From Takakia lepidozioides (taxonomy: Eukaryota > Plantae > Bryophyta), in the NCBI GenBank assembly GCA_030704615.1, contig CM060731.1, forward strand, positions 28,892,001 through 28,956,000: DNA of 64,000 bases, given 5' to 3'. Shown here in pieces: positions 14,744 through 59,750 of this stretch (within the stretch, counting starts at the first letter, position 1; each line of letters starts with the position of its first letter). A model generated the notes under the pieces. That model was not told the origin of the DNA and searched no databases. It saw only the letters and a program-made list of their open reading frames with translations. The position numbers and the translations under genes are program-made.

Positions 14744-14808
14744 TGGTATCAGGGCAAGATTCTATCTGAGAGATAGAAGGAGATGAGTATTTGATTTACA
14801 ACCAATAG

Positions 14809-14912
14809 GCTTGAGTGCTTGGGGTTAGATCTGAAAGCTTGAATGCTTGGAGTTGAGTGCTTGGTGTCAGATCTGAAAGCTTGAGTGCTTGGAGTTAGAT
14901 CTAAAAGTTTGA
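14809..14912 (+). repeat. ~28-bp tandem repeats in the copia 5' leader
   Basis: About 3.5 imperfect copies of GCTTGAGTGCTTGGAGTTAGATCTGAAA. Confidence 0.75.
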
Positions 14913-15030
14913 GGGTGTTTTATAGTTGGCAAAACATCAAACCAGTATCATGACACACTCTGCTAATCATACCCGAGTGAAGAAGTTAGATGGTCACAAT
15001 TTTCATGCATAGAAGATTAAGATGGAGTTC

Positions 15031-15865
15031 CACTACAACAGATCGCGGTATTTATCACTGTATATATGACTATTCTGCAGTCATAAACGGTATATATGAC
15101 TTCTATGACTGTAAGTCGTGCAAACCAAGTGAATACAATGAGTATAGGATGGTACGGTCCAGATGACTACAGTCAGATGAACCAAGTGATATCTCTCACT
15201 GCAGTCATATATATCATACTGCAGTCGCCGCTGTCGCGCCACGAGGTGAGGCGCAATTGATTAATTTTTTTTAAATAAAAATAAAAATAAAAATGTCAGA
15301 CGCCACGTCGCTCCGCGTTGCACCACGTGGCATAATGCAATTTTATAATAATAATAATAAACTATATGACAGCCTATCTAGTGTGTCACGTGCTATCCTT
15401 AGCTCGCCTATTAACCCTAGGGCCATCATATCCATTTGATTGTACTTAGAGGAGTTTGAACCTACAACCTGTTTGCTATAAGATTTATAGTTCACTACCT
15501 GCTAACCAATACACCCATTGTTCATTCATGTGATCATATGGTGTTTTAATTGTATTATACACACCAAATTACAAAATCCCCAATAGTCATCATGACTATG
15601 TAACCTCGTCTATGTGCACTATAGTCATGGAAATGACTATGAGTGGTGAGCTAAATCTGGTCAATTGTCGTTGACCAGCCTTCCGCCTATTCCGGAGCCA
15701 TGTAGTCATACAGACGACTACTTAGATAGTCGTTCATATGACTATAGTCATACGAACGACTACGGGAGGTCAATTTCATATAGAAAACATGATGCATTCG
15801 TCAAAGTCAAGAAAACCATGACTACCGCGGGTTGGCAGTCATAACTACCGCAATCTGTTATAGTG
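15031..15865. mobile_element. Non-autonomous CACTA (En/Spm) element nested in copia gag
   Basis: TIRs CACTACAACAGATCGCGGTA / TACCGCAATCTGTTATAGTG, 3-bp TSD TTC and ATGACTA/TAGTCAT subterminal repeats. Removing it restores the gag frame KMEF|ILHEKDLW. Confidence 0.93.
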
Positions 15866-16899
15866 TTCATTCTTCATGAGAAAGATCTGTGGGAGATCAC
15901 ATCAGGAGAAGCGGTTGCACCAGTTCAACTGCAGCCTGAAGATGGAAAGATCATAGCCGCAGGGTTGACTCCTGAGCAACAATTTTTAACGAAGAAAGAT
16001 AAGTTGGCTCGAGGAACCATGTTGTTGAATGTAGCAGATTCAATACTTCATCATGTTGCACATGCTAAAACTGCTAGAAAAGCATGGTTCAATCTATGTA
16101 TCAGTTTTGGAAGAAAACACGTCGTCAATCGGCTCTATCTTAACCAAAAATTGTAAGATGGAGGAAGGAAGTTAAATTCAAGAAGAAGAAACACAAAGTT
16201 TGTTTCTTTTATGGCATAAGAGGTCATTATGCACGTGAATGCTTCAAGAAAAAGCTAGACGATGAGAAGAAGGAAAAGTTACAGAGTGAAGTTTTATCGG
16301 CAATTATGGCTGACAGAACTAAACTTTTTTGTTGTAGCTTTGTCAATCTCTCCTAGTTGTAGAGATGTATGGTGAATTATTGATTCAGGAACATCTCAAC
16401 ATATGACGTTCCAAATGGAAGCATTCTCAACCTTCAAAGAACTCTTTGTGGGACACAAGGTGTATCTTGGAGACAACAGTACTACTAGTCTTGATATACA
16501 TGAAAAGGTACTGTCGTGTTTCAATTATTACCTGGAGTGTCATAAGAGATCGGAAATGTTCTCTATGTTCATAGATTGACAACGAACCTATTGTCAGTTA
16601 GTCAGCTAACTGAGCAAGGTCTTATGGTTGAGGATTCTACCAGTCAATGTTGGTTGAACTAAGGTAGTTCAAGATGCAAGATTGTACAAACTGTTGGGGC
16701 TGTCCAGGCGTTACATGTGGATTGCAATGCTACACTCAAGTAGAGTGACCCCGGGCATCAGAGACTTGGACATGTCTCAATCCAAAGTTTGGCATGCACG
16801 TCAGCTAACAATCTGGTTGAAGCATGGATCTTACAGGAGATCAGGTCTTGAGTGTTTTGTGATGGATGTGTGTATGGTAAACACCATCGCAACTCATTT

Positions 16900-19571
16900 C
16901 CAAAGGATGGAGGTTCTTGAACAAAGAAGGTTCTTCAACCGGTGCATACTGATCTTCGTCTAAATCTCATGAAGATGCAAAGTATTTCTTGACCTTCACT
17001 GATGAGTTTTCTAAGAAAATATTTCTTTACATGATGTAGAATAAGTTTGAAGTTCTTGATAGGTTCAAAGCATTCAAAGCTTTGGTGGAGAATCAAACTG
17101 GAGAAATGATCGGTGTGATGGCGGTGATGAGTACATCTCAAGGAATTTTAATCAATTCTATAAGGAGATTGGTATTGTGAAACAATCAATCACACCATAT
17201 ACGCTAAAGTAGAATGGAGTCGCAGAGAGGAAGAATCGAACACTTATTGAGAGTGTGAGGTGTATGTTGCAACACATGAGGTTGGACCACCGTTTCTGGG
17301 CAGAAGCAGTGGCGACTGCAGCATATCTCCAGAATCGACTTCTTACTAAGGCAATCTCTACAAAGACACCTGAAGAGGTTTGGAAAGGTAGGAAACCTTC
17401 AGTTGATCATTTGCGCGTCTTTGGGTATGTTGCATTTGCCCATGTTTCAAAAGAAGTAAGGAAGAAATTGGATGCAAAAACAATCAAGTGTATCTTCATT
17501 GGTTATTGTGAAGAAACCAAAGGGTATAAGTTGTATAACCCTGAGAGCAAGTATGTGATCATCAGTCGTGATGTGATATTCAATGAGTCCAGGAACTTTC
17601 ATCAGAAAACAGTAGTTCCAAGTTTGGACCATGAAAAAGAGAACTTGGCTCTAACACATGAAGATAAAATGGAAGAGAAGATTGTTGAAGAGATAGTTGA
17701 GGTTCAAATGGAGGAGGTACAATCTACTATGATTGAAAAACCCTCAAAAGTATCTTCTGCCTATTTCATTGACAGTGATGAACCTCAAAGTGTGTCAGAT
17801 GCAATGAGGAGTGGGAACTCTTCACACTGGAAGGAAGCTATGGCATCTGAGTTTAAGTCTCTTCAGGATAATAAGACTTGGAGTCTTGTTCAACTTCCAT
17901 CTGGACGGCAGTCTGTTGGCTGCAAATGGATTTTCAAGGTTAAGTACAATGCAGATGGTTCTGTAGCAAGATACAAAGCGCGGTTGGTTGTAAAGGGGTT
18001 TTCGCAAATTGAAAGTATTGATTACAATGAAACCTTCTCCCCTGTTGCACGGATAGAGTCAATTCGAGTGATTCTAGCGTTTGCAACTGTTGAAAATCTT
18101 GAGGTACATCAGATGGATGTATGTACAGCCTTTCTCAATGGAGATCTTATGGAAGAAATATACATGGACCAGCTGGAGGGATTTGCTGTAAAATGGAAGG
18201 AGAGGGTTTGTAAGCTCCTCAAGTCCTTGTATGGTTTGAAGCAATCCCCTAGGGCATGGAATGCTAAGATTGATGCATATTTCATGGCTGAAGAGTTTGA
18301 GAAGAGCTCTGCTGATTATAGTGTTTATTATAAGAGGGCTCATGGAAACTCTTTTGTGATCATAACATTGTATGTTGATGATCTGATCTTGGTCTCTAAT
18401 GACTTGACTTTGTTGAAACACATACAGAGTGTCAATATCTCAAATGAGATTGAGATAGTGGTTGTGTGATCATAACAAATTGACTTTGTTGAAACAAAGA
18501 CAAAGTGATATCTCAAAGAGGTTTGAGATGGTGGATTTGAAAGAGATCTTGTGATCATGAGTTGATCAGGCTCTGTTGAAAAAAACAAAGATCGATATCT
18601 CAATAAAGCTTGAGATGGTGGATCTGAAAGAGATCCAGTACTGCTTGGGGGTATCGGTAACTCGTGTTCGACAAGACCGAGCGATTTACCTGAACCAACG
18701 TAAGTATCTTGAAGATATCTTAAGGCGCTTTGGTATGGCTGAAAGTATGCCGGTAAATATCCCGTTTGTCCCAAATTGCAAACTCTCAAAGGAGATGAGT
18801 TCTAAGAGTGTTGTAGACTTGGAGACAATGAGAGATGTTCCCTATCAGAGTGCTGTGGGAAGTCTCATGTATGCAATGGTCTGTACTAGGCCAGATATTG
18901 CACAAGCAGTGGGGGTTGTAAGCCAATATGTGGCTAACCCTGGGCATCTCCATTGGGTTGCAGTAAAACGGATTTTCCGTTATCTGAGAGGCACATTGGA
19001 CTATGGTTTGTGCTTGAGAAAGAACAATGATAATGTTCAGTTGGATCAAGTGGGTTCATATGGTATCTCAGATACTGCTTGCAAAAACACAGAGCTATAC
19101 GGCTATTGTGATGCAGATTGGGCTGGTAACATTGATGACCGCCATTCTACATCTGGCTATGTTTTTATGCTAGCAAATGGAGTTGTAAGCTGGAGCAACA
19201 AGAAACAATCTACAATTGCTATGTCCTCGACTGAGGCAAAATATATGGCTGCATCTCAAGCTATAAGGCAAACATTATTGTTATCATCATTTCTATCTAA
19301 TATTGGTCATCCATAGAGGGATACCATGGTCATATATGATGACATCCAAGGGTGTATTGCTCTCTCAAAGAATCCAATGTTTCATGCTCGCACAAAGCAT
19401 ATTGAGATTTATCATCATTTGGTACGAGAGAAGACTGAAGCTGGAGTTGCCAAGCTTGTATATTGCAACACCAACAACATGGTTGCAGACATACTGACAA
19501 AAGGGCTTAGTGCTGAAAAGCTTGAACGCTTTCGAGGCTTGATGGGAGTAGTTAAGTGCTTAACTTGGTAA
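16900..19571 (+). pseudogene. copia pol (integrase, RT, RNase H), fragmented
   Basis: ORFs 17255-18469, 18576-19316 and 19326-19571 carry FWAEAV, ARYKARLV, QMDVCTAFLNG, YVDD, YCDADWAG and ADILTKGL motifs. Confidence 0.92.
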
Positions 19572-19586
19572 CACGTTGAGTGGGGG

Positions 19587-19874
19587 TGTTGGAAATCAAC
19601 TCCTGACCAAGTTACTACTACCTAGAGTTACTGTGATGACAAGTCAGGCTTCCATAATAGGAGTGCTGACAAGTCACAGTTAACAATAGAGATAAGCCTC
19701 GGTTAGCTAAAAGATAGCTAAAGTTAGCTTCAGTTATTAGTGACTCAAGTCATTGTACCAGAATAGCAGGTGGACATAACTTAAGTAAAAGCATGGAATT
19801 ATGCTATAGTTATCTCAGCTATTTCTGCAGTAATCAGTTCATCTTTTACCTTCATTCTCTGTCGAATTCCAACA
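19587..19874 (+). repeat. copia 3' LTR (288 bp; 83-bp internal deletion)
   Basis: Near-identical to the 5' LTR except that the segment equivalent to 14614-14696 is missing. Confidence 0.95.
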
Positions 19875-20597
19875 ATAACAACATGATGCATGAAAAACAA
19901 TCGGATGTAACCTGTGAATGTTGTTTGACGGGGGACATAGCAAGGCCCTCGTCACACGCGGCTAACACGCGGCTAGTCACATAATGGCTCCTCCTTTGTG
20001 AATATTATTTAGTTTTTTTTCTTAAAAATAATTAACCAAATTTTATTGAAAGAGGCAAAATTAAACCCCAAAATAGCCCTTTAGTTTAATTTTCATAGCA
20101 TGGCGTAATATTCTTCCATGGTCATTTTTCATTTTTTTCATTTCCTCATCACTTGTTGTACAATCAAGGAGGTGTTACTTAGGAAAGTACAAGGGAATCA
20201 AACTCATTTTGGCATGACTGATGAGTAGTCTTCTTCTACAAGAAGGAGCCAATGAACTATTTCTATTTCCAAGTTTTTTTGAAACCATGGTGGATGGTTA
20301 ATATTGTCATGCAAGGTGCCTAAGAGCATGCCCAACAGTGCAAAAAAATACTGTCAACTTCAAAATGACGCTTGTTGTTTTTTCAGCTGCCTTCATGCGT
20401 CCCCAATGGCACCACGAGGCTCTTTAATCCCCCGTCCCCGCTTAAACTCATCCTCTCTCCCACGACATCTACTGCTCCCTTGCTGACCCATAAAGTTGCA
20501 CATTATCGTCAGATTCGGTGGGCCAACGGTCAAGTTGTCTGATGGACTAGCCGTCCCTCCGCGCCTTAGCCTTGGGCCTGCGTTGGGAAGAGCGTCC

Positions 20598-36400: not shown

Positions 36401-39400
36401 ATTGTGCATGCTCAAGGGGTGCAAGATGATGCCATCACTGTCATCAATGCTGGGCAATGGTTTGGTGATATGGCGCTCGAATCAGAAAATTTCATCCGGT
36501 TTGTTCTGACAGGTCTTCTGTTGTACACTGATAAATATAGAGTACTAGAGGCCTTTTCCCATGACTGGCAGCCAGACTGCTGAATCATTAGCCCAAAGGC
36601 TTTGGGCAGAGCCTAGAATTAGGCACACTTCAGCCTATGAAATGAACACAATTACTACATGACTGGCAATGGCCTGAAGAGAGAGGCATTTGCAGATCGT
36701 CCAAGAGAAAGCTTCTGCCCCCATTCAACGCCACAATCCTTGGGTTTCCAGGGGAGTTTGGTTGGAAGACGGAGTTCTCCGCTGCTCCCCATGGTGGCAG
36801 CCACGTAGTATCCACAACGATTTTATAACTATCCATGCTGCGTTAGCTAAACTCTAACTTTCAGGTCCCCCTTGCCGGTTGTGTGGTAAGGCCCTAGCAA
36901 TTATACTGCCCTACTCAAACATCTTTGGCCATGAACTGCTGCATACTGACGGCTGAGCACATCGCAGTTGGTGGGAGCTTTGCCAGTGTGCAAGGACTCA
37001 TGTGGGAAACTTTGATAGGAAATATGACCCTGTCCACTGTGACTAAAACTGTTATGGATTGTGCTCCTGGGACTTCCACTGGGGACCTGTGAGCCAAGCC
37101 TACAGGGCATGTGTAGCTCAAGGATTTCATCTTCTGACACCTGTACAGAGTCTAGCCTGCATCACTTCCTGGTAAAGCAAACACACTATAAATGTTAAAT
37201 ACTTTTATAATCTGGGAAGTAGCTCTGTTGCATGAGGACGAAGGCATCCGTTTCCATTCTAGTGAAAAGGGACTTGCCTGGGTAAGAGTAGGTGTGAAAG
37301 TTAGTTGACAACCCCTTGAGCAAATTGTAACATTAGTCAGGGTTTACTGTGGTTACAGGGAAGCTACATGCATCACTCGTGAGAAGGTACATATCTGAAT
37401 CAGTTGAAGCCTCAAAGTTTGTACAATGTCTTTCATCAGGCTATAGTCCATGGTAAGGCAAATCTACCTGGTGTGAATGTTCATCGAGTTTTGTATGTGA
37501 GGTGAAACTCGGGAGGTTGGTTTTAGCTGTAATCATTATGAACCACCAATCCACAATAAACTGGTCATCTATTTTTCCTGCCCAAAAGATTGTGTTGTGT
37601 AGTCAGAGCTGCTGACTCTAAGCAAGCATGACTATGAGTCCATTCTCAACATTCAAAAGACTGCTGAGCTCACTGAGCGTGTCCAATTTCTCCAGGTGAC
37701 CCTCTTTTCCTCTGTTGGTGCCAGTCTCATGAGTCAAGCATTTTTGTTCTGAAGTATGCAATTGAGTGAGGTGTCTGAAAGCAGAGGGGACATGCATAAC
37801 AACTGGCAAGCAATTAGTTTGTGAGTTGATGGGAACACAAGATGAACCATGGGCCTGAGTGCCCCATGGGTGTGCAAGCTTCGGAGTGGATTAGCAGCAT
37901 AGACACCAGAGGGGTGATCCAAACAAAAGAAAGCACTCTGGCTTAGATGGACGAAATGAGATGAAATGAAAAAATGCTTTATAACGTCCGCGGAAAGCTC
38001 ATAGAGCTTATGGGAGAAAACATGAGAGAGGAATCAAAACCAGAGCTAAGAATAAAAACTACTATTGCTCGAGTGATTGTCTAAGGGTGAAGGCCTCGTG
38101 CAGGTGAAGTGAAACGTAATGGTGAAAAGGGAATCATCATTTCCTAGTAGGATTAGAAATACCACCTTTCCGATCATCTACTGAATTTTTTAATGACCCA
38201 AACCTAGACTGAATGGAGGGGCAGTTCCTAACCATGTGCGCGTGAAACTTCTAACTGGAGGCACCTGGGAGGTGCACTAAATTAGCTCAGACCAAGATCC
38301 TTGATGAATCTGGAACTTCATGTTGTGCCCCATTAACTTGTGCATGAGGTGTGTCTCTTATCAAACAACCGCCGATAGGCCTTTCTAACAAGAGAAAGGG
38401 TTCACAATGGGTGCTTGTTTTGGGCAGAGCATTGCTACATTCCAGAATGTGTCAAAGCAAAGCCTGACGCGGCTGGCTAATGTCCTAACACACCGCTCTT
38501 TTGGAAAAAACAGGGGTATGCCTCCCTTTGAATCTAGTACTTTGAAGTCTCCTAGTTAATGTCAAGCTTAAGTTACATGTTAGAATTGGAGATAATAGAG
38601 TGCTTAGAGAAATGAAATGAAATGACACTTTATAGCGTCTGCGGAAAGCTCAAAGAGCTTATGGGACAAGAGAAAGCATGAAACAAGAAAGAGAGAGGGG
38701 CCTTCCACAAGCATCCCAGAAACAACTATTGTTCAAGGGATTGCCTCATGCAGATACGCTGCTTAGCATTTCTGATCCTCATAATGGAAGACATCTGTGG
38801 GAGAAAGGAAATGAAATGGTACTTTATAACGTCCTCGGAAGCTCAAAGAGCTCATGGGACAGAGGAAAGCAGCATACAAGAGAGAAGGGGGGGGCCTCAG
38901 CAAGCAGCCCAAAGACAGCCATTCATCAAGAGATTCTGTAAGATGGAAAGCCTCAGTAGATATACCGAAAAATGAAATGGTACTTTAAAGTTAGAAAACT
39001 GCCCCTGTCCTCACTTAACGATGTTGAGAGATAGTTTTACTGTGCACAAGTAGCAGACAAAATTTGACAGCTGAATGATACAGGAATTGACTAGTACTAA
39101 AAAGATGAGAAAACTGGAGACTGGAAGCTCCCTTGCTCCCTACTCAAAAGAAAGCTAATAGAGTTGTCTGTAGATGCTGGACTTCTCCTTCTGCAATCTA
39201 CCAGGATAGCACATCAACCTACATGCTACAAGAAGTACTCGCTTTGCCTCAGCCTTTCCTTCAATCCTAAACAGGTCCTCTGGAACCTTCTGGAAGGAAC
39301 CATCTTTAGCCATTAAAAAAACCCTAACCAAACCCTAGCTAACAGTCCCAATGATTAGCTAAATCTCAGCTGACTTTCAACAATAATGACTGCAGAAAGC

Positions 39401-42400
39401 CTACAGAAAAAAGGAAAGGAAGATTTTACGTCCATGGGAAGGTCAAAGAGATTATGGAACAAATGAAATGGAATGGTACTTCATAACAAAGAAAGAAGTA
39501 TGTCCTTGACAGTGCCAGACAGGGCAGAGGGGAAGTCGGAGACCAGGGGAAAGCAATATGTGCTGTTTCTCTTGTGATGTACGTGATATTTTGGGGTGTT
39601 GGACTGAAAACCGGTTATATGATGTGGGCAGTGATCACCTTCCAAGGAGATGATGCTGTTGAGATGTACTTCATAAAGTCAGGGGAGTGCAGAGTAAGTT
39701 TCTTGCTGAACTGATCTATCAATGGAACACGGCCATGCGGCTTTCCCATGTGGACTTGTTTCCCATTTGGATTGTTGGTGTGATTAGGCAACATACAAGA
39801 GGTTGATGTCATCAGAGGTGCTGTAGAACTCATCTGCCCTCCTGAATCAGTTGGATTATATCTATCATAGTCTTTATAGCTCTGTAGGTTGACACAATAT
39901 ACTCACTGCCTAAGCGAGCAATTGTTCATGGAAGCTTAGTGGAGATGTAGATATGTATGTGATGAGAAAAAGGTAGGGATACAGGCACGAGACTGTTTAT
40001 GAATCTGTTGTGCACAAACCTGTTTTGATGCAGGTGATAATGAAGATCCATGAAGAGAGGACATTTCGACGTTTACCCCGGGCTTCGAGCTTTTTATCAC
40101 AGTACTGGTATGTATTTCTGCATCTTCCTGCAGCAAATTAGGCCTGGATTTTCAGCGTTTCATTCTTTTGTGTCTCCTCTTGGGGCTTTCCATGGATGTA
40201 AAGTTCCTTCCTTGTTCCATTGGCTCTCATTGCCCTCTGGACATTATAATTTTGCTGCTTGTGCTTTAGACAATCACTTGAACAATAGTTCTTATCTCTC
40301 TGGCTTCCTGTTTTCTCTCATGTTTTTCTTTCCATTTTGTCCCATAAGCTCTATGAGCTTTCCGCGGACGTTATAAAGCACCATTTCATTTCTCTGAGCT
40401 ACATGTCAGGAGAACTTGGAAGTTACCCAACCTCACGACAAAGCTCCATTTCTATCGAGAAACATTCTTGGTTCTCCGAGATGATAGAATCTTGCGGCCC
40501 AATGGGAAAACCTGCAGTGGGAGGACCGCCTCTGTCCAGCTTGCACAGGGCGCAACCAGGAAATTGAAACTGAAGAACACTTCTTCTTCTATTGCCCTCA
40601 ATACTATGAGATCCGTGGGAGATTCCATTGTCTATTCCGTGGAACCCAATCTCTCACTGAGGTCTTTCACTATGAGGATCAGAAATGCTTGGCAGCCTAC
40701 CTGCACGAGGCATTCACCCTTAGACAATCACTCGAACAATAGTTCTTATCTTTGACTCTGGTTTCCTGTTTTCTCTCATGTTTTTCTTTCCATTTTGTCC
40801 CATAAGCTCTATGAGCTTTCCGCGGACGTTATAAAGCACCATTTCATTTCATTTTCATTTCTCTACTTTCTCTCTACTTTCGGTTGTGAATTCTGGGCTC
40901 CTGCCTTCCCAGTTTCCTGGTGGGAAAAGAATCTGGAACCATTGCAGTCATTCTTCCTCCAACTAATGCTTGGCGCCAGAGGCACAACTCCATCTCACAT
41001 ACTCAATGCAGAATTCGCCTGTGTGCCACTTCAAACTGAGGCCCTTTTCCGGCTTACAATTTTCCTGCATTGTTTACAAGCCCTTCCCCCAAAGGGGCTT
41101 GTGGCCAGGGCCCTCACAACATCTATTAGACTAAAAAATGCAAGCTTCAAACAATCCTGGTATGCTCGTGTGGATACCTTTTTTGAACGCCATGGACTCT
41201 CTATTGCTTCACTATTGCCAGTGAACCCAGAAGGGGTGGACATCATATCCAAGCACGACCGCAACCGACTCATTAGAAAGGAGCTCATGGAGCTACATGT
41301 CAGGAGAACTTGGAAGTTACCCAACCTCACGACAAAGCTCCATTCCTATCGAGAAACATTCTTGGTTCTCCGCGATGATAAAATCTTGTGGCCCAATTAC
41401 CTTTCGGCCTCTTTATCTCCTTCTCTCCTGAGGGCTTTGGGGCGGTTCAGGGTGGGCTCCCACAACCTACGTATAGAGACTGGCAGATGGGAAAACCTGC
41501 AGCGGGAGGACCGCCACTGTTCAGCTTGCACAGGGCGCAACCAGGAAATTGAAACTGAAGAACACTTCTTCTTCTATTGCCCTCTATACTATGAGTTCCG
41601 TGGGAGATTCCATTGTCTATTCCGTGAACCCAATCTCTCACTGAGGTCTTTCACTATGAGGCTTGGCAGCCTACCTGCACGAGGCATTCACCCTTAGACA
41701 ATCACTCGAACAATAGTTCTTATCTCTGACTCTGGTTTCCTGTTTTCTCTCATGTTTTTCTATCCATTTTGTCCCATAAGCTCTATGAGCTTTCCGCGGA
41801 CGTTATAAAGCACCATTTCATTCATTTCTCCATAAGCTCTTTGAGCTTTCCGCGGACGTTATAAAGTACCATTTCATTTCATTTCATTTCTCTTACTGGG
41901 GCTGTTTGTGGCCCCTCACTCTTTGTTGTTTCTCCTTCGTTATAAAGTACCATTTCATTTCATTTCCTCATGAAGTACCATCTCATTTCATTTAAATTTC
42001 CTCTTGCTCCATAAGCTCTTTGAGCTTCCCAGTTCAAGAAAAAGGACAGGGTTGACAATGCCCACAGAGAAATTAAATGAAATGATACTTCACAACGTCT
42101 GCGGGAAGCTCAAAGAGCTTATGGGACAAGAAATGAAATGAAATGGTGCTTTATAACGTCCGCGGAAAGCTCGTAGAGCTTATGGGACAAAATGGAAAGA
42201 AAACATGAGAGAGGAACAAATCCAGAAACCATAATTAATGTTCTAGCGATTGTCTAAGGGTGAAGGCCTCGTGTAGGTAGGCTGACAAGAGAAAGCGAGA
42301 AAAAGAGTGGGGCCCTCCACAAGAGAATGAATTGAAATGAAATGAAATGAAATGAAATGAGATGGTACTTTAGAACGTCCATAGTTGCAGTTATATGGAG

Positions 42401-45400
42401 ACACCTTCCACCATCCTCTGCAGGGATGGAATCTCACTGCCAACTACTTATTCAAGCCTCTCCCTCAGTCTGTGAACCCCACAAAAGGCTCCGGGAGGGT
42501 TAGTTTCCCACGGGATCAATGGCTTTAAGGCTATGGCGATTTCTCAGGGATCGGCATGAGTACATTCTTTTCCTGGCATAGGGTCTATGGCCACAAGGCT
42601 ATGGTAAACGTCTTATGAGTACGTTTTCTTTTCCATGCATTGGGACGATTCAGGGTGGGCTCACGTAGAGACTGGCAGATGGATAAGCTGCTGCCGCAAA
42701 ACACCTTTGTCCTGCTTGCACTAAATGAGAGATTGGAGACTGAGCCAGACGAATATTTCTTCTTTCACTAACGAAATCCGGGGCCGCTGCTTTTACCTAT
42801 TTAGAGACAGCCAATCCCTGACCGGTTCCATTGCGAGGATCTGAGCTTCCTTGCAGCAAGGCAAGGAATCTCTTCACCTTAGAATCTCGTGAACTTAAAT
42901 TGTAGTATACTGGAGCTTCCGATGGATTTTTTCCAGTTTCTTTCTTTCCACTGTCTATTCCGCGGAACTCAATCTTTCAGATCAGAAATGCGGAACTCAA
43001 TCTCTCGGATCAGAAATGCTTGGCAGCTTACCTGCACGAGGCCTTCACCCTTAGACAATCCCTCCAGCAGTAGTTTTTTTTTGCTCTGGTTTTGTTTCCT
43101 CTCTCATGTTTTTTATCCATTTTGTCCCATAAGCTCTTTGAGCTTTCCGCGGACGTTATAAAGTACCATTTCATTTAATTTCATTTCTTTTCTCCAGTCG
43201 CTTACTGAAGTCTTCCATTATGAGGATCAGAAATGCTTGGCAGCTTACCTGCATGAGGCCTTGACCCTTAGACAATCCCTTGAGCAGTAGTGGCTTTTGG
43301 GCTGTTTTTTGGCTCTGGTTTTGTTTCCTCTCTCTGGTTTTTTCCCATTTTGTCCCAGAAGCTCTTTGAGCTTTCCGCGGACATTATAAAGTACCATTTC
43401 ATTTCATTTCTTGTTTCTTGCTTTCCTATTGTCCCATAAGCTCTTTGAGCTTTCTGCGGACGTTATAAAGTTCCATGTCATTTCATTTCTTCTGTTTGGA
43501 GATAAATATATCCGAGGGATGGAGAGGCCCGCAGATCAAAATTCATACACCCAAAACAAAACAACAATCAAAAGCCAACTTTATAAACCTCTCCAAGGTG
43601 CATATCAACTTGTCGGCAACCAGAGCAAGCTTCTCGCTGCAGTCAATCCACGGAAGACTGGTCAAACTAGCCAAGAGAAACTCGGACCCAGTACAAGGAT
43701 GCAAAAGCCAAAGAACCTAGAATGACATGGGCTGTTCTGAAAAACCCTTACTACATCTTGCTGGAAACCACATGTTCTTGATGGCGGACCAGTTTGCTGG
43801 TCGGCCAGGAGAACAAGAAATAATAACATCCACGGGAAGCCTAGCAGTGCTCAAATAATTCTGCAGTCTGCTGGATCAAGTTTCATAGAGGCCGCAGGCT
43901 ATTCAATGGCCAATATCTCCACGGTGTTGATATGTGAACCGTGGCTTTCTGTCTTGATTGGTCCTGATTTTCATCCATGGCACTGGAATTGAAATCATGT
44001 ATGTAGCGTGCACATGCAGGGCCCACATATCACTTCATCTTCTTTCCTGGAGCAGGCTTGTACAGTCTGGCATGACCTCAAGGGGATAAACATGATCCCA
44101 CGAAAATAGATTGGGAACCCCAGTGGCCATGATAGGGCACCATCATTACATGATACATGCTTTGCTTAGAGCCTGAACAGTAATCAACATAGGGCCTGGT
44201 TATCTATGCTGTAATCGATTTTTTGCAGTCTTTGTCAATGCACTGTGAGGGACCTGTTCTAGCTTGCTTTTCAGTTCAATGCATGACAGTGATACAGCAA
44301 TGAGGTGTAGTTAACAATCACTTTCTGGCAGTCAATGTCTTGCCCGCTGAGGCCCATGCTGAAACACCATTTTGTTTCCATAAATAGCCCCTGTAGTGTG
44401 CAAGGATGGGCCGGATTGATCTCTTGCAGCTAGAATATAGGGGGTCCAACTCCTGGCATATAGTTGGTGGGGCCAGTTTGACGTTCGTCACCTGCTAAAT
44501 GGGCCGCTAGGACATGTGAGTAAACTTTGAACGATTGTCACAAACTAGCATTCTGGCCTTCACTGTTTGGCTAAACAGAGGCATTGCTGAAACAGGGTGT
44601 GTGCATTGACATGCCTGTGCATTTGGGAAACCTCCAATCTGGGACTCACACATCCTTTACGAAATCATACATTGTGCTTTGTGTGTGTGAGTGCAAAGAC
44701 CAACACATTGCCTCTGGACGGAGCCTAACATTACCACTGCTGTTAATGAACAGGCCCACAAAGCACCATCACTGCAAGCAGGAGATGGAAGAAAGGGAAC
44801 GGGAGTGGTGGCATCCATCACTTGTCAAACGGTTATCTGTTGAGAAACCACGAACCTCACGAATCCTACGGTCCCAGTCACTGCCATTCACCAGGCTTCC
44901 TTTGCGGCTAGGTCCAGCTTTGCTGAGAAGCCCTGACATGATAAACCAATTAGTTGTGCGCAAAAGATCCCCATCTCGTGCCCGGCGCTCTCTTGCAGGC
45001 ATCCGACGGTCTACATCATCCTTTAGCAGCTTCCTGCCTGCCAAGGGACGCTCCATGTCATCATTTAGACGGCACAGCTCTGTACCTGGAATCCGTCGTA
45101 AGTCCTCCAAGAAGCATAGCTTACCAGCCGATTTAACGGGGGACCTTCTGTCTGCCTGGGGTTCCCCTAAAGGCTCTTCTGAAGTTTTAGTCCGGTCAGG
45201 GACTCAGGAGCATCGAGAGTCTTCTTTTGTTGGTGGACTGCCAGTGAGCATGGCTTCAGGCTCCCTGGGGTCCAAGTCCTGGTCCTTGAGTAACGCAGAG
45301 GAGGAAGCTGTGACCACTAGGGCACACTTTGACTCGCGAAAACACGCTTCATTCCACTGTAGCAGGGAAGAGATGCCCCAAAAACAGAAATACTCATTGG

Positions 45401-47485
45401 GTCTGTTTTTAACAGAATGTGAGAAAAAGCAAAAGGCTCAGAAACTGGCTGAAATGGAATTCTCAGAGAAGGACAATCTCTTGTGGCAGATTGGGAGCAT
45501 GAGGGAAGGAATAATGCCTGCTGTATTGGGCCAGGAGAATGTGTACTATCAAAAGAAGTTCCAGAGATGGGCCCATAATGTTATCAACCGCGAAAAAATA
45601 TTGTTATCCTACAATGTGTTTGCAGGAACATCAGCGCCCAGCTTTATGCCAGGAATATCCGACAGCACGGTTATGAGACTCGTGCGTGACAAGTCTGACC
45701 AGAAGAAGTCCACAGCTAGGAAATCTGCAAAGCCTGCCAAGGTTGATACCCTGACCTCTTAAGACTGTTGATTTGTCAGCCCTTTTGGTTTAGTTTGTCA
45801 GTCCACATCTTTGTCTGTGTTAGTCATGTGGTGGTTTGAAAGCTCGATTCCCAAGTAAAATTACACCGGACCTTTCTTGCTACATGCCAAATGCTCCCAT
45901 TCATGCTTCGTCAGAAGTGACATTTTATCCAGAGGTATAGACTAATTGTGAGCTTTGGGTCATTTGTGGGGTGGTGGTCAGGCTTCTACAATCCTTGACA
46001 TTGGGGCACTTAATCCTGGCCAATTCTTTGGAGAGGTACTGACTTGCTTATCTTTAGCATAAATATGACCCAGGGACTTTTTACCTCTGACCATAAGTGA
46101 AGTCGTTCTAGTGAACCATGTCCAGTTTCACATGCTAGTAAATATTCCTTGCTCCATATTCTCCACAGACCAGGCCATGATTTTTACAAGTTGGGAAGCT
46201 GTAATTCCGAATGGGTTTTTGTGGGATTTGATGGATTCTGATGGTGCCTATAGTGATGCAGAGGGGCTTGATGACACATACAAAAAGGGCAGCTAGCATT
46301 GTGGCGGTGACCAGGGTCGACACACTTGTGCTAACAAAATGGGACTACCACCGACACTGTGACCGCAATATTATCAAAGTCCTCTCTCAAAATGTATGTT
46401 GCTTGATAGCCCTCAGGGAGTAACATACACACACCAGTCCATATATCTCAGCATATGCATGATGCATGTGACATCTCACAGCACTGACTGTTTGAATGCG
46501 TTTGCTTGTTTATAGATTGCATGTCGAGTGATGAACTGTTGTAGTTGTCATTTATAAGTTTTGACTCTTGTGAGTGTCCGTTTTGGTGTATGTTCAAATG
46601 TAATGTGAACTATTAAGGATTTTTGGTTTACGACTGACGAACTGTGGGATTGAGGGTGTAAACAGGAGTACAAGAAGGAGAAGCATCTTTACAAGGAGTA
46701 CTTGAAAACATGCAAGTGGGAACGGCACAAGGTTGTTGAAACTCACATGTTTGCCATTCTGTTACCCCATCATACCTATCTACAGTTTGATGTGAGAAAG
46801 TAGGAGCTCTGTAGCTCACTTCACTTCTACAAGGATGATACCTTCACTGGAAATGCTGCTGCAATACTACTTATCTGCCACATTCTTCGCATCACTCACC
46901 TGTGCATTGGAGCCTTTTAGAATCAGTTTGCACAATCTGAAGATTGAGAGGCAGAATTGACGTACTATGCGGGCACAGAATATACCTCCTCGCATGTCCA
47001 ACAGGAAATTAGGTGGAGGGAGATCCTACTGTCTTTCCTGAGGCTGTGCATCCTTAGCAGAGGCATTTAGTTTTGAAGACGAGAGAGATGTTTCCAAGCA
47101 TCAGCTTTGGGTGGCGCTGGATGAAGTGATTTCTAGTGGTTTCTTTGTTTGTTATCTGTTCATGTCCCATAAGCTCATCCTGTGAATGCTATGGAGTTCT
47201 TTCATCTCCTGGCTTCCTGTTTTCTCCCATGTTTTTCTTTCCATTTTGTCCCATAAGCTCTATGAGCTTTCCACGGACGTTATAAAGCACCATTTCATTT
47301 CATTTCTCCCCCTTGCATTTTCAGCAGCCTGTTGGGGATGACTTGTGCAGAGGAAGGTGGTGGAGGATGCGCTTGCAGCCAAGAAAAACCGCATAGCCAT
47401 CCGAGTAGGACCACGCGAAGTGCGTGTGCTCCCTAGGCCGGGCGCATCAAAGAAAGAGCTGCCCAGAAAGGAATGGCTTTGGTAG
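33432..47485 (+). CDS. Multi-exon protein with two tandem cyclic-nucleotide-binding (CNB) domains (CNBD2-like)
   Basis: Phase-consistent exons at 34683-34861, 35284-35380, 35801-35846, 36072-36130 (KQGQKGNIFYIVFTGSLK), 36398-36498 (GQWFGDMALESENFIR), 37359-37386, 37603-37695, 38428-38515, 39632-39693 (FQGDDAVEMYFIKSGECR), 40034-40107, 44754-45741, 45982-46035 (GQFFGE) and 46262-46393 (RAASIVA..TLVLTKWDY). The first exons (~33432-34050) and last exons (~46950-47485) are tentative. Confidence 0.82.
37954..39490 (-). mobile_element. Several antisense RTE-X LINE 3' ends in CNB-gene introns
   Basis: (GAAAT)n followed by CTTTATAACGTCCGCGGAAAGCTCA.AGAGCTTATGGGAC at ~37954, ~38608 and ~38808, plus degenerate bits at ~38970 and ~39420. 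Confidence 0.8.
40266..43490. mobile_element. Stack of 5'-truncated RTE-X LINE copies with (CATTT)n tails
   Basis: More than 10 copies of the same 3' UTR. Plus-strand copies lie at ~40266-40392, 40395-40862, 40863-41828, 41829-41890, 42940-43190, 43205-43410 and 43430-43490. Minus-strand copies lie at ~42070-42128, 42130-42285 and 42335-42380. Confidence 0.9.
40863..41697 (+). pseudogene. RTE-X ORF2 C-terminal part (post-RT region and CCHC zinc finger)
   Basis: FGCEFW...Q.FFLQLMLG....TPSHILNAEF...PL and RFRVGSHNLRIETGRW...RHCSAC...ETEEHFFFYCPLY, motifs characteristic of the RTE-X clade. Confidence 0.8.
47215..47305 (+). mobile_element. Short RTE-X 3' end
   Basis: Same GTCCCATAAGCTCTATGAGCTTTCC..GGACGTTATAAAGCACCATTTCATTTC terminus. 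Confidence 0.85.
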
Positions 47486-52384: not shown

Positions 52385-53642
52385 CCCCGTTTCAGATAAG
52401 CCATTGGGCACAAATGAGGAAAGGTCACCCCCAGACCAACCGGTCATGAAATAAATCATACCCGCAGGACAGAGTAGCACAATTTGAACCCTGAAGGTCC
52501 CTTGGAAGCTGGTTTGGCGTGATATTTGGAAAAAACACAGGTCTTCGAAAGTTACGGCCTTCCTATGGAAGGTGGTCAGTAAGATCTTGCCTGTGGCGGC
52601 AAACTTTGAAGATTCATCCTTGAACTGTGTCTCTTGTATCCTGGCTGCAGAGGAAAATTTGGAACATGCCTTGGTGCTTTGTCCATTCGCCCGTGCTGTT
52701 TGGGAAAAGGCCCTTCATCTGTACTCTTTCTGGTCCTCTAACTTGGACTCCTCTCCTTCTGTCTTGCTTCTCAATGTCAAGAATGGCAGAATTCATTGTT
52801 CTTGCCCTGTTTGGGAGTCACTGAGAGGTATCATATTGTGGCAGATTTGGAAAATGAGATGTTGTGTGGTGTATCAAAAAAAGAGGTTGTGTTTGAACAA
52901 AGTTCTTTTTCTGGCTCACTCAGACCTTAAGTCTAAGGCTCGCAAAGCTTGGTATGTTTTGGTTGCAGCTCTTTCCAAGTGTCACAGCAGTCGAAGACCT
53001 CAACTCTTTGCCGCCTTCGACAAATCCTGGGAAAAGATTTCGTGTTCTGCAGGAGAATTGATGACACTAGGATTGTGTGGGAAGACTCCCCCCCTGCCTG
53101 TTGGAAGCTCAACTAGTACTAAAGAGACTTCCTTGGAGAACGAAGACGCAGAAATAAATTGGAGACACAAGCGTAGTGGCTCTAGGAAGGCAAAGTCAAA
53201 GACACAGCTTTCGTTTGATGGGCCCAAAAGAAAAAAGGGTAGTATATAGGTGGCTTTTTAAGTCAACCAGTATCCTATTTCTCTTGCCTTCCCATATGGG
53301 ACAGATGGTCTTGTTTTCATAGTTCTTCTTTTCCTTCCCCCCCTCCATCCCCTTAACTTTTTTTTCACTTATCCTTTCTCTTTTTGGTCTTCACCTCCTC
53401 TCTAATTTTCCTTAGTTAGGAATTTACTTCCAGCTGAGGCCAGATTCATCTCCCCTGATATTTGACATGTTGGTCCTGAGTGGTACCTCTGTAATTTGCC
53501 TTACGGCTTTCTGTAAAGTTATTTTTTCCTTACAAACCTCTTAATAAATTTACAGGGCTACATCCCCCTGTTAAAAATTTAAAAAAAAAAAAAACTGAAC
53601 CACAAGAGTGACACTGTGCACTTCTATCCAACTGAGCTACTA
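52385..53642 (-). mobile_element. tRNA-derived SINE split by an L1 insertion
   Basis: Joining 53642-53596 to 52484-52385 on the minus strand gives TAGCTCAGTTGGATAG...GTGGTTCA|AATTG (A box and B box). Confidence 0.55.
52491..53595 (+). mobile_element. 5'-truncated L1 LINE with poly(A) tail
   Basis: WKLVWRDIW..KVTAFLWK, the CCHC motif CVSC...ENLEHALVLCPFARAVW and ILWQIWKMRC. AATAAA at ~53543 and an A-tail at 53581-53594. TSD TGAACC at 52485-52490 and 53596-53601. Confidence 0.88.
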
Positions 53643-54254: not shown

Positions 54255-54638
54255 CGGAGTAATGAGTCTTGAAAGCTGTGATCTGGTACAAACCAGAGTA
54301 GAAAATGATAGACTTACTTTGCACGCTTCTTTTCTCTCTCCTTGTTTTGGCGACAACAATCAAGATGCTGCGATTTGTTCTTGAAGTTTTGATGGAGAGC
54401 ACGCCACGGGAGATTGATGCTCGAGCTGTCGAAAGCGGGTTGTTGGAGATATCCGGTGTACTAGTGGCAGTGCATGATCTTCACATTTGGAAGCTAACCA
54501 TGGGTAAAACCTTTTGCATGCCATATCCGAATCAAGCGAGAGGCAGATGCTGACAGTCTCCTACAATAGATGACAGATTTATGTGAAATGAAGTACAATC
54601 TCACCTATGTGACCATACAGGTTGAGCGAGATTTTTGA
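54255..54638 (+). pseudogene. MTP1-type CDF (Zn) transporter C-terminal pseudogene fragment
   Basis: [27 protein letters not shown]...[14 protein letters not shown]...AVHDLHIW...CHIRIK.EADAD..YNLTYVTIQVER, with in-frame stops and a frameshift. The N-terminal part is absent. Confidence 0.88.
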
Positions 54639-55399
54639 GGGGTTAGGGTCATTGCCTCACCACGATGTATGTGAATTCCATTTTCTATTGTACAGTCAAC
54701 GAATTACAGTCAGCAAGGGACATTTGGACCCCACCTGAAGAGAATGTCTTTGGATACGAGGAAAGAATTGAGATGAGAGGGTTCAAGTGATTTAGCGAGT
54801 TGGTATAAATTAGGGTTTGTACTGACTATTCTGTCACCAGAGAGCTCTTTGAAGCAGCTTGTGATGGTCAATGAAGTTGACTTCTACTTGCAAGACCCAC
54901 TAGACCTGTTGCAGGGAATCTGAACCCCGTATGGAGCAAGAACCTATCTTAGAGGGTCAGACATTCATCAGGTTTTGATGGACAACTTGAGCTATTGATG
55001 ACAACTTAACAAGGTTGTTACTATCATTATGGTGCTCTGTGCTTTGCTTGGGGTCCTTTGTTGGAGTTGCATCCTCGCACATTAATATGCTAAGCAGTTA
55101 GGGAAATAAGGTCCTACTATTAGAGAACGGTCTTTCCTTCTATCTTTGGACTTAATGGATGCGGTGGGGAGTTGAGTTTCTCTTTCATTGATTGTATATT
55201 GATTGCAACTGACCAAAATATTGTAGTGTGGAAAATCTGAGATGACCGTTCTTTGCCTCCTCAAATCGCCGCTTCGGTGACACATCGTCCCCATCGGGCT
55301 CACCAGGATCATCATCTTTCGGGTCGTTCCACTTTCGCTTTGTCTTTCCCAACCCTTTGTTGAGGCCGATCTCAAGGACGATCGCGTACTGAACTCTAA

Positions 55400-55411
55400 G
55401 CTCTGATACCA
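55400..55411 (-). promoter_or_regulatory. tRNA-iMet primer-binding site
   Basis: The minus strand reads a perfect TGGTATCAGAGC, 2 nt from the CA end of the adjacent LTR. Confidence 0.85.
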
Positions 55412-55413
55412 AG

Positions 55414-56795
55414 TGTCGCGCACCTCACTTCGGTAAGCTCCCCTTCAAGTCATAGTTACTCGCTTTGATGCGCGCCTAACTCCCAAACTGGCCGCCGGGG
55501 CTCGGAATTTCGGTTGCTCACCGGGACATAACGGTCCCCTTTTGCTCCTCCACAAGACCCTCTCTCAATTTGGGCTTAGTGGAAAATTCCCTTTGGTTGT
55601 TGGAAGTCCGGATCAGCTCCCCACACCTTGGTCGCTTTCCGGCTCGCACGCTTACTCACTAGTTTTTGGTCACCAACGGGCTTGCACCGTTCTCGGGGTT
55701 ACTACTCCCTATATATACTTTTGTGACTGTCCGCGGGGGTTTCACAAACAACACCATCCTTTTATGGCGAACCACCACGAAGACCCTCCATTCCCGGTGG
55801 TGAGTCGCGGTGAGTCTTGGCCCACCACCACGGCCCTATTGGACCGTGATGAGTCCCAAGACTCCCCACGACTCCCACCACAAGGTCTCCGCCCCATGGT
55901 GAGTCCTATGCCACCCCCACTAAGTCCCACTAAGTCCCACTAAGCTACCACCACCCCTCGGAACCACCCCCACCGCAACCCGGTGTGCGGGGTTCCACCT
56001 AGTGAGCGCCTCCGCCTCCTTGGGCACTCAAGGGTGCTTCAGCCCCCGTATCTATTGTTGCCACTGCCCCCACCACAGGGGCAGCCCATTTTGTGTCCCG
56101 ACCCCCGAAGGGCCGCGACACAAGAGGGGCTGCCCCTTGTGGTGGGGGCAGTGGTAGCAAATAGGAAAGGGGGTTGAAGCACCCTTGAGTGCCGAGGGCA
56201 CCCAAAGAGGCGGTGGCGCTCACTAGGTGAAGCCCCGCAAACTAGGTGGCGGTGGTGGGGCTCGACGAGGGGTGGTGGTAGTGTAGGGAGTCGTAGTGGG
56301 GGTGACATAGGACTCACCATGAGGCTGAGGCCTTGTGGTGGGAGTCGTGGGGAGTCTTGGGACTCACCACGGTCCATTGGGGCCGTGGTGGGTGGGCCAA
56401 GACTCACCGCGGCTCACCACAGGGACGATCGAGGATCTAAGTGATTTGGACTTGGCTACTTGTGGAACCCCCGCGGACACCTACAGAAGTATACATAGGG
56501 AGTAGTAACCCCGAGAACGGTGCAAGCCCGTTGGTGACCAAAAACTAGTGAGTAAGTATGCCAGCCGGAAAGCGACCAAGGTGTGGGGAGCTGTTCCGGA
56601 CTGCCATCTACCAAGGGGAATTTCCACTAAGCCCAACAGATCGAGGGTCGAGTGGGAGTGTGAGGGGGACCGTTATGCCCCGGTGAGCAGCCGAAGCTCC
56701 GAGTTGGCCCGGCGGCCAGTTTGGGAGTTAGACGCGCGCATCAAAGCAAGTAACTACGACTTGAAGGGGAGATTACCGAAGTGAGGTGCGGGACA
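55414..56795 (-). mobile_element. LTR (1,382 bp) that is a full-length inverted repeat
   Basis: Termini TGTCGCGCACC...GGTGCGGGACA with an adjacent PBS. The two ~690-bp halves are reverse complements, with a centre at ~56105. Confidence 0.85.
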
Positions 56796-59750
56796 GCACG
56801 GCTGGACCGCTTTTACTGCTCCCCTACTCCTATGGTTTGGGCTAAACCTGGTATTCAACGGCCGGTGCTCCCAAACTTCGACCATGCCAGTATTTCGATT
56901 TCTTTCTCCCTTTCCTGGTATGCAGGGCCAAAAAAAATAAAAAAATCAGGCTGAATCTTTCCCTGCTTAGCATTCCTGCATTCCTGCAACAGATCAGGGA
57001 AGCATGGGCAGCTTCTGGAAACCATTTCACCTCCCCAACTTTGAGATTCATTAGCAAGTTGGAAAACACCAGGAAAGTGGCCCAAAGATTAGCCCCTATT
57101 TTTTTGGCAGATCCAGGAATTGTCATGAAAGAGCTATCCTCAAATGCCTTTCGGGTATTTGAAGTAAATAGGTTGGGTCCCCAAACGATGACTTCTTTTG
57201 CTTTAGCTAAGCACAATTTGACTGAGCTGTTGGCATCCACGGAGGACAACCTTAGAAGAAAAGCATGTATCAATTGGTCGTTAAAAGGAGAGAAAATGTC
57301 ACGTTATCCTCAAGGTGAAGCAACAAATTGTTGCTACTTCAATTTCTGCTCTTTCAAATTCCTTATCAACATTTTGCAATGCCTCCGGTCTACAAGTGAA
57401 CTGGGGCAAATCTGTTGGTTTGCTCTCCCAACTTAAAAGTAACTCGACGGCTTTCCATTGCCTTCAAGACTTCACTCTTTCGTGGCTACCTGAAGGGCAA
57501 TCTCATACCTTGCTAGGCCACCAAATAGGACACAATTTAAGCAACATGCAAAGATGTGAAGCCGTGCTTTCCAGGCTCAACTTGCTTACTGGAGTTCTAT
57601 TTTTCTATCTATTGTGGGCAAAGCTCTGGTGGCCAACCAGGTGCTTCAGGCCTCCAATTGGTTTGCCTCGTCAGTCTGGTCTCCTGGTGCAACAATCATT
57701 AAGAAATTCAAAGCCCTCATTCGAAATTTTATTTGGGGGGCTTCTCAATCTAGACCCAATCGCAAGGCTCTTGTAAGCTGGGACCAGCTCACTCAAAAGA
57801 AGAAACGTGGAGATCTGGGGCTGTTAGATCCAGACACACAAATTTGTGCACTTCTAGCCAAATGGATGCCAAGAATTTTTTGTAACCTGGCTGCCCCCTG
57901 GAGCATTTTGGTCAGTCGCCACCTCCTGAATGCAACCCCTTCATCCTCAATCCTTTGGCCTGCATCTTTGCGGTGGACTGTGCAAGGTGGAACCTCGAAT
58001 AGTTCCCCCAACATTGGCTCCCATCCATCTAGGTTGCGTGGATCAGAATGCGCCCCTTCCTGGCTCAAACAACTCCCTCAATCCCTGAAGAAGCACTCAC
58101 ACAGCCCTTATTTGGGAACTTCAATAGAGATTCGGAGGATCTGGTAGTATGCTCTCATCGTTGGGCTCACTAGGAAGCAGCCACCATCTGTCACTTCTCC
58201 CATATCTGGGAAAGTGGCTTCTGCCCTGTGCCGAAGCAACAACAACCCTCTCCGCCAGAAGGGCGGCAGCAGGATGGGAGTCAGTCACTCGAGACATTCC
58301 TGACAAATGGATTTCACTTTGTTCTTACCCTGCTAATCTTAGATTTCTTCCTGCCTTGTTGGGAATGGATGGGCCTGAAGGAAAATATGCTTTCTATGCT
58401 ATGTTTAGAGAAGGCTCCTCTCTTGTTGGCTGGAAGTACAAGGTTAGGTCGTCTGGCTCTTTGTTCTTTCCAGAATGGATTACTATGGAAGAGGTTAATC
58501 TTTTCCCGATTAGAGTGATCTGCTGGGGCACGGGAATGGTGAACCCCTCTCTTGACAATGGTCTTCATTCAAACCCTCACCTTCGCTGGTTTCTTCTGGC
58601 TCCCATTTCTCTTCTTCAGTTTGATGCAGGTGAATGGCTTTGGAGGGATAAGAAGCATAGTCATTTCTTCTCCTACTCAGTGAAAATGGGAAGTTCCTTG
58701 ATTAAACTTGCCTGCAGTTTTAATGCCATGTGGGCTGCAAAGTGGTCCCATATTTCTGATTGCCCTTCTTCTTGGGATAAGATATGGGGTGATGTCTGGA
58801 GAAAACACCGTTCGGCAAAGGCTTCTGGTTTTCTTGGGAGATTAGTTTTAACAAGATCCTACCAGTTAAGAGTCATATCTCCAACACTGATTTCAATTGC
58901 CCCACCTGTCGATTGCATGGCCCGGAATATATTGAACATTGTTTCATAGAATGTCAGTTGGCTGCCAGGATCTGGGCTACAGTTCTCACCTTTTATGGCA
59001 CTGCATGGAAACACTGCACTTCTCCTTCCATTTCCTTGTTACTTCTGAATTTCACTATTGGTTGACTGTCCAGTGTGGGCGACGCTCAGACCCCACACTC
59101 TGTGGAACATCTGGAAATCCAGATGTAAGTTGGTCTTTGATGCAGGACTGATAAATGTTAGAGATGTGCTTTGCAGGATTCACTCAGACCTGATGTCTGA
59201 GGGCAGGAAGGCGTGGGTGGTGGTATATGAAGCTGTTCGCAGGTCTAGCACAAGAAGGGGAGAATAACTGCTCCTTCAGTTTGACTCGACTTGGGCCAAT
59301 AGGGAGGTCATCTGCTCCAAACCATCGCCCTCAACAATTCTCTGGAATGACTCCATCCCATCAGGCTGGGAGCTCCTTTAATGCTATGCAATCGCCCTTG
59401 GATGGAGAGGAGTCTGAGGTCAACGGGAGACACCGTCAGCGTTCTGTTAGAAAGACGAGATCTAGGACACAGCTCTCTTATGAGCCACTGAAATGAAAAA
59501 GGGGTAGTCTTAGTTCTTGGTTCTCTATGGTTTTATAACCTTCTTCCCTGTTTTAGTGCAAGCATTGCTTCTTCCCTTCATTTAGTCAGCTGTTTTTCTG
59601 GTTACTTCCCCCTCCACCTTATTTTTTCCTGTGCGTACTCCCTCTCAATTTTGTACTCTTTGGACTTCTTTTAGTACACCTACTATAAAGTTAATCGAGG
59701 CCACCATCCCTTCTTCTGTTAAACTTACTTGCATATATATTTATATTTTT
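56796..59750 (+). mobile_element. Decayed L1 LINE (end of EN domain, RT core deleted, C-terminal zinc finger, 3' UTR)
   Basis: ARLDRFY..SDH (end of EN), then WSLKGEKMSRY joined to FCNASGLQVNWGKS, followed by GKALVANQVL..FIWG..VSW..GDLGLLD, WDKIW and LWNIWKSRC. Confidence 0.85.

Follow-up and report, generated by a model that had tools for sequence, protein, structure and literature searches.

A 1.38-kb palindrome in Takakia lepidozioides as a probable head-to-head join of two LTRs from an ordinary retrotransposon family

Mu killer of maize is an inverted partial duplication of MuDR, and its hairpin RNA silences the family. Kilobase palindromes are the raw material for hairpin-RNA silencing loci. 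Inverted structures also occur within LTRs; in maize Sireviruses, the LTRs contain short palindromes within U3, which are inherited by all copies (PMC4728375). Reverse transcriptase can, in turn, self-prime from a hairpin at a DNA 3' end, as described for HIV-1 minus-strand strong-stop DNA (PMC6088434). A literature search returned no description of a fully palindromic LTR; in the papers retrieved, the term 'palindromic LTR' refers to the TG..CA motif.

The locus described here lies in the window, by which we mean the whole 64-kb stretch of Takakia lepidozioides DNA that was analysed. Like Mu killer, it is a singular event in which a transposable element was partly duplicated in inverted orientation, next to a host gene able to read into it. 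It differs in that its arms are 13% diverged, its family may be long dead, and the duplicated part is an LTR instead of a coding region. The LTR of its family forms a terminal hairpin of a similar order of size to the Sirevirus palindromes, but the latter do not turn the whole LTR into a fold-back (PMC4728375). With the HIV-1 strong-stop DNA that is extended from the cTAR hairpin, the locus shares its central anatomy, namely an inverted repeat centred on a pre-existing hairpin, which in HIV-1 results from the extension of a hairpin-ended DNA strand on a DNA template. The HIV-1 snap-back products were, however, in vitro dead ends that comprised R-U5 and not a whole LTR and had identical arms, whereas the window structure is chromosomal and has unequal arms (PMC6088434).

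We propose that the segment at 55414-56795 is very probably a single, old and dead rearrangement of an ordinary LTR retrotransposon, in which two LTRs stand head to head, and that no family with hairpin LTRs lies behind it. As an object it is of an ordinary kind, a rearranged and decayed transposon fragment with a neat anatomical detail.

Structure of the palindrome and its primer binding site

The initial annotation described an LTR whose left half, of ~690 bp, is the reverse complement of its right half, with TG...CA ends and a short loop near 56105. The measured structure agreed with this description. The segment 55414-56795 is an imperfect 1.38-kb palindrome with two arms of ~690 bp each (55414-~56105 and ~56110-56795), closed by the central loop CCGAA (56105-56109). 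Its termini read TGTCGCG... at 55414 and ...CGGGACA at 56795. An inverted-repeat search of the window tiled the segment with 16 colinear repeat pairs, and a blastn search of the left half against the whole 64-kb window returned only the half itself and the reversed right half; no further copy of either arm was detected by blastn elsewhere in the 64-kb window. Global alignment of one arm with the other gave 579 identical, 89 substituted, and 46 gapped columns, the last in 14 indel events that reach 9-12 nt, which corresponds to 86.7% identity over the ungapped columns. As RNA, the entire segment is predicted to fold into one hairpin of -1185 kcal/mol. An Rfam search of the segment returned only sub-threshold miRNA-like matches to the central hairpin. 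The inverted duplication of transposon sequence that characterizes a Mu killer-type silencing locus is present.

The motif TGTCSCG was found six times in the window, with five occurrences inside the palindrome segment. A third copy of the LTR-end motif (CACCGGGACA; 55519-55528, plus strand), with its TGTCCCG-type core at 55522-55528, is situated within the left arm, 115 nt from its end. The right arm has only a disrupted counterpart, and chance is the probable cause of this copy.

A primer binding site (PBS) adjoins the left end of the palindrome on the minus strand, as annotated. The dinucleotide CT (55413..55412) is followed by the exact 12-mer TGGTATCAGAGC (55411..55400, minus strand), which is complementary to the 3' end of the initiator tRNA-Met. 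This 12-mer, located 2 nt from the palindrome end, is the sole exact copy in the 64 kb. It is followed by a leader remnant of ~145 nt (55254..55399, minus strand), in which the homology to two related contigs described below (L001 and L002) stops at ~55254, where gag would come next. No gag or pol sequence was found in any frame to the left of, and thus beyond, the leader remnant, and no second LTR in direct orientation was found in the 64-kb window. The window copy is therefore a truncated element fragment, cut 145 nt past the PBS.

Each arm carries a TATA-like motif, and the pair noted in the initial annotation, one at ~55710 and a counterpart with one mismatch, was located precisely. The first (55709..55718, minus strand) reads CTATATATAC on the plus strand and GTATATATAG in the sense direction; it faces the PBS, ~295 nt ahead of the LTR end, and is conserved in the relatives L001 and L003. 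The second (56489..56498, plus strand; GTATACATAG) has one change and faces rightward, away from the centre.

The family LTR in independent relatives

Relatives of the element were recovered from public assemblies at two independent loci, represented by L001, to which L002 is identical, and by L003; they are 8-15% diverged. The successful search route began with a 75-aa ORF at the PBS, which matched the protein P0001 at 80% identity among 1.8 billion protein representatives. The P0001 contigs L001 and L002, from two separate runs, were identical to each other. The LTR ORF of L001 led through P0005 to the contig L003, from a third run. Of the other queries, a 133-aa ORF inside the LTR had no protein match, and an N-terminal piece of gag (P0004) matched only itself; all of the protein clusters were singletons. 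Likewise, metagenome contigs yielded no match to a conserved 22-mer or to a centre-proximal pattern, and viral contigs yielded none to the 22-mer or to an LTR-end-plus-PBS pattern.

L001 begins with 471-473 nt of unrelated flank, followed by the LTR (474-1199), CT, the PBS TGGTATCAGAGCC, the leader, and gag. Its PBS is a 13-nt match to tRNA-iMet in the sequence ...AACA CT TGGTATCAGAGCC, its leader matches the window up to ~55255 by blastn, and the gag that follows was identified by Pfam (PF03732, E 1.6e-14). In the relatives, the leader extends over ~250 nt before gag. L003 is a 726-bp solo LTR (1199-1924) with CCCTT, a perfect 5-bp duplication, on either side; it has no PBS and no inverted LTR copy. 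Neither L001 nor L003 contained an inverted match to its own LTR. In both, the LTR corresponds to one arm of the palindrome, and the LTR start motif of both relatives (TGTCGCGGCCC) falls at 56120 (minus strand), at the palindrome centre. The family LTR is therefore one arm of the window palindrome.

These observations define a family whose LTR measures ~726 bp and has TG...CA ends, and whose members duplicate 5 bp of target, use a tRNA-iMet PBS, and encode a gag of the PF03732 type. Gag proteins of the PF03732 type are carried mostly by Ty3/gypsy elements. Pol was seen in no copy of the family, whether in the window or in the relatives, so that an assignment to the Ty3/gypsy superfamily would be tentative. 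In the relatives, the LTR, the 5-bp duplication, the iMet PBS 2 nt after the LTR, and the gag after the leader are those of an ordinary LTR retrotransposon of solo or truncated fate; the window copy differs in being cut 145 nt past its PBS and in bearing an extra inverted LTR at its U3 tip. The initial annotation had considered a family whose LTR is a giant hairpin, and had named beforehand, as the finding that would speak against it, non-palindromic LTRs of one arm in other members. Such LTRs were observed in both recovered relatives, next to a PBS and gag in L001/L002 and as a solo copy with its target duplication in L003, and the proposal of a giant-hairpin family is thus not supported. Its placement of a 5' LTR beside the PBS was correct, as the LTR-CT-PBS order of L001 shows.

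With the family LTR as reference, the palindrome was resolved into two LTRs. The first, LTR_L (55414..56120, minus strand, 707 bp), is the complete LTR of the truncated element, starting with TGTCGCGGCCC at 56120 and ending with GGTGCGCGACA at 55414. It aligns over its full length with the LTRs of L001 (p-distance 0.079) and L003 (0.095) and is followed by CT and the PBS. Its termini, TGTCGCG (56120) and CGCGACA (55414), represent TG...CA with short terminal inverted repeats, and the same termini were found in L001 and L003. The second, LTR_R (56121..56795, plus strand), is an inverted LTR body that spans the family LTR from nucleotide 41 (CAAGAGGGG...) to the U5 terminus (...GGTGCGGGACA). Its p-distances are 0.152 to L001 and 0.141 to L003, both above those of LTR_L; overall, the inverted arm was rated as two to three times more distant from the relatives. 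LTR_R lacks a separate hairpin and is not followed by a PBS, and the palindrome does not continue into the PBS on this side.

Two further features of the relatives' contigs were noted. In L001, an ORF of 152 residues (P0003; 36-494, plus strand) lies directly upstream of the LTR and ends within the first 20 nt of the LTR; it had no Pfam match, and could be a host gene or part of another element. In L003, the flanking segment 275-476 and the window segment 63313-63519 have another repeat in common (73.6% over 208 nt), which indicates that the contigs derive from the same or a closely related genome.

The central hairpin and the origin of the join

The LTRs of the relatives start with a hairpin of 40 nt. 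One strand of its stem, a, occupies nucleotides 1-11 (TGTCGCGGCCC, or TATCGCGGCCC in L003), and is separated by a loop of 17-18 nt from the other strand, a' (GGGTCGGGACA), at nucleotides 30-40. The a' sequence pairs with a at 9/11 positions, and the LTR body then starts with CAAGAGGGG. The terminal hairpin is predicted to fold in all three sequences, the window, L001, and L003. At the palindrome centre it is present as a single copy common to both arms (56094..56120, minus strand), composed of a (TGTCGCGGCCC), the loop TTCGG, and a' (GGGTCGGGACA); the loop is shortened to 5 nt, versus 17 nt in the family. When the centre was read on the minus strand, together with LTR_L, it matched the family hairpin arms at 22/22 positions. 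When read together with LTR_R, it showed four mismatches, located precisely at the non-complementary positions of a and a'. The hairpin arms match the family exactly on the minus strand only, and the lone hairpin therefore belongs to LTR_L, the LTR on the PBS side. LTR_R begins in register directly after the shared hairpin and ends at the last nucleotide of the family LTR, 56795.

Several simple origins were rejected. A blunt join of two whole LTRs would leave two hairpins at the centre, where one is seen. In a host fold-back duplication, nothing would halt the duplication at the U5 terminus, as the other arm runs on into the PBS and the leader. A plus-strand strong-stop product ending at the PBS was ruled out, since the leader extends 145 nt further. 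A hairpin remnant of a resident LTR was also considered at the left breakpoint, where the 8-mer CTTTGCCT (55251-55258) is shared with the hairpin loop; it was dropped, as neither the bases around the 8-mer nor the predicted duplication GCACG agree with it.

In this arrangement, the second LTR body (56121-56795) is attached, inverted and in register, to the U3 tip of LTR_L, with the single terminal hairpin as the centre. The join might have been produced by hairpin-primed DNA synthesis, or by insertion beside a resident LTR combined with a small deletion. In the former case, a DNA strand ending at the U3 tip would bear the complement of a at its 3' end. Three partners could supply the complement of a' to which this end anneals: the strand itself, a second minus-strand DNA carried in the particle, or an LTR already resident in the genome. 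Once annealed and extended, the end would generate the template LTR, one hairpin, and an LTR body in register, which is the order seen. With minus-strand DNA or a resident LTR as the template, the new arm would end at, or run through, the U5 terminus. In the latter case, integrase may have placed the element immediately next to a resident solo LTR of opposite orientation, and later slippage between two 11-nt repeats (9/11 alike) may have deleted one hairpin unit. Under either route, the remaining element would have been lost, or would never have been present, past the 145-nt leader.

An alternative to these schemes concerns the relationship between the arms. If the arms were twins, LTR_R would have been copied from LTR_L by snap-back self-priming or by host fold-back repair, and all of their differences would have arisen later at the locus. 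The in-register join and the single shared hairpin, owned by the template LTR, are what snap-back predicts, and the self-priming activity is itself documented (PMC6088434). Such copying would, however, have had to end precisely at the U5 boundary while its template ran on into the PBS. The substitutions also argue against it. In the four-way alignment of LTR_L, LTR_R, L001, and L003, private substitutions numbered 49 in LTR_R and 16 in LTR_L (p 5e-5), compared with 21 in each of L001 and L003. After the hairpin and the columns within 5 nt of a gap (<=5 nt) were dropped, the asymmetry persisted at 26 versus 9 (p 0.006). It was no longer significant, in favour of twin arms, when clustered changes were counted as single events (16 in LTR_R versus 8 in LTR_L, p 0.15). 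The informative sites favoured each of the three possible trees about equally (5, 7, and 4), which indicates a star-like phylogeny with LTR_R on a long branch.

The pattern of the differences between the arms points in the same direction as the private substitutions. These differences were over-dispersed (index 2.1, p 0.002), only 8/89 were of the CpG-decay type, and the ratio of transitions to transversions was 49:40. A long identical block had been noticed in the initial annotation; it comprises 62 nt (55654..55715, mirrored at ~56492-56553, and assigned to neither strand) and is situated just downstream of the TATA motif in the LTR sense. Its length exceeds that expected by chance at this divergence (permutation p 0.003). 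The block is conserved family-wide, with 2 variable columns in ~60 across LTR_L, LTR_R, L001, and L003, and it is thus almost invariant in unrelated copies as well as untouched between the arms. The plain decay of two identical copies does not predict the asymmetry, the over-dispersion, or the spared block, and different templates are therefore the more likely source. Simple self-priming predicts twin arms, yet LTR_R has more private changes, and for this reason a second template or a resident LTR is invoked. On moderate evidence, the arms probably came from different templates and are not twins; an origin as twins appears unlikely, though it is far from fanciful. The suggestion of a one-off inverted duplication in the initial annotation thus broadly survives but needs two corrections: the axis is no random point but the LTR's own terminal hairpin, and the arms are probably not copies of each other.

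With its join centred on the LTR-tip hairpin, the locus illustrates clearly, in a natural setting, how a kilobase palindrome can be seeded by a short terminal inverted repeat. Were this anatomy to be found again elsewhere in the genome, it would indicate a specific replication error of the element family and not a random rearrangement. A more general reading is that the hairpin at the family's U3 tip regularly primes the inverted joining of LTRs, with either its own strand or another LTR as template, and thereby generates a genome class of head-to-head LTR palindromes, which might serve as hairpin-RNA sources against the family upon read-through from neighbouring genes. We regard this generalization as speculative and rather doubtful.

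Remaining explanations and genomic neighbourhood

A different proposal retains the whole 1.38-kb fold-back as the LTR of a lineage, with the window copy as its 5' LTR and the relatives as a sister lineage that kept the ancestral short LTR. The outer ends form a good TG...CA pair, the inverted arm terminates exactly on its outer side, and a divergence that spares the conserved block would fit constrained arms in a replicating lineage. Against this, both relatives have LTRs of one arm, and at these two loci the LTR start coincides with the palindrome centre, where it is fixed by the target duplication of L003. The window holds no second fold-back LTR, and the arms are unequally diverged from the relatives. 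Furthermore, retroelement progeny inherit their U3 from the LTR at the 3' end, which follows the polypurine tract. An arm outside the U3 tip of the 5' LTR would consequently not be passed on to progeny. A fold-back-LTR lineage is, on these grounds, very unlikely.

Chimeric fold-back reads are a known artefact of long-read sequencing, and the palindrome could in principle have been assembled from such a read. An artefact of this kind would give near-identical arms, whereas the arms observed are 13% apart with 14 indels, and each has its own differences from the independent relatives; within a long contig, the segment also continues into unique sequence on either side. From the divergence, the indels, and the arm-specific differences, we judge that the palindrome is not an assembly fold-back, and we consider an artefact highly improbable.

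A fold-back DNA transposon (MuDR-like or MITE-like) adjoining a chance PBS-like 12-mer, to which the long terminal inverted structure would correspond and which the initial annotation had mentioned in a MuDR-like form with 8-10-bp target duplications and no PBS, is scarcely credible: no target duplication of any length between 2 and 10 bp was detected at the palindrome ends (55413/56796), the 12-mer is exact, unique in the 64 kb, and 2 nt from the end, and the relatives share the LTR-CT-PBS-leader-gag order and have 5-bp duplications. DIRS elements have inverted terminal repeats, an internal complementary region, and a tyrosine recombinase, and lack both a target duplication and a tRNA PBS. 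A DIRS-like retroelement was rejected in view of the PBS, the 5-bp duplication in the relatives, and the lack of a recombinase in the little family coding sequence available.

The palindrome lies close to a host gene. An exon of a cation-efflux/zinc-transporter gene, with a weak ZT_dimer match, was located at 54305-54553 (plus strand), ~860 bp left of the PBS. LTR_L points antisense into the 3' end of this gene, and read-through of the gene would cross the palindrome. The possibility that the insertion had split a host exon was rejected, since no frame continues across the joined flanks. A decayed piece of an L1-type LINE with a zf-RVT tail is present to the left of the palindrome (52572-53249, plus strand), and decayed, ORF2-like L1-type remains are present to the right (~57180-59000, plus strand), such that two L1 pieces bracket the region.

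The symmetric promoter and built-in dsRNA source suggested in the initial annotation are not borne out by the orientation of the LTRs, which are head to head with their TATA boxes directed outward. Judged by these motifs, the structure does not drive its own hairpin RNA, and such an RNA would require transcription that enters from an external promoter. Transcripts of the zinc-transporter gene on the left, or of the L1 on the right, could reach through both arms and so form one. Any transcription started by LTR_L would run antisense into the 3' end of the zinc-transporter gene.

Other repeats were recorded in the window. An A-rich tract (AAAAAAAATAAAAAAA; 56930-56946, plus strand) lies 135 nt beyond the right end of the palindrome and might represent the tail of a short non-LTR element. 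A complete-looking Ty1/copia element with plain LTRs (14373-19877, plus strand) served as a comparator within the window. Its LTRs have the form TGTTGG...CCAACA, and the target duplication ATAAC is present on both sides. The PBS TGGTATCAGGGC was found at 14744-14755 and an RVT_2 ORF at 17255-18469. An internal deletion has left the 3' LTR shorter than its 5' counterpart. The regions 37950-43500 and 47200-47310 contain a dense cluster of repeats of 130-350 bp, which occur in both orientations and are 72-97% alike.
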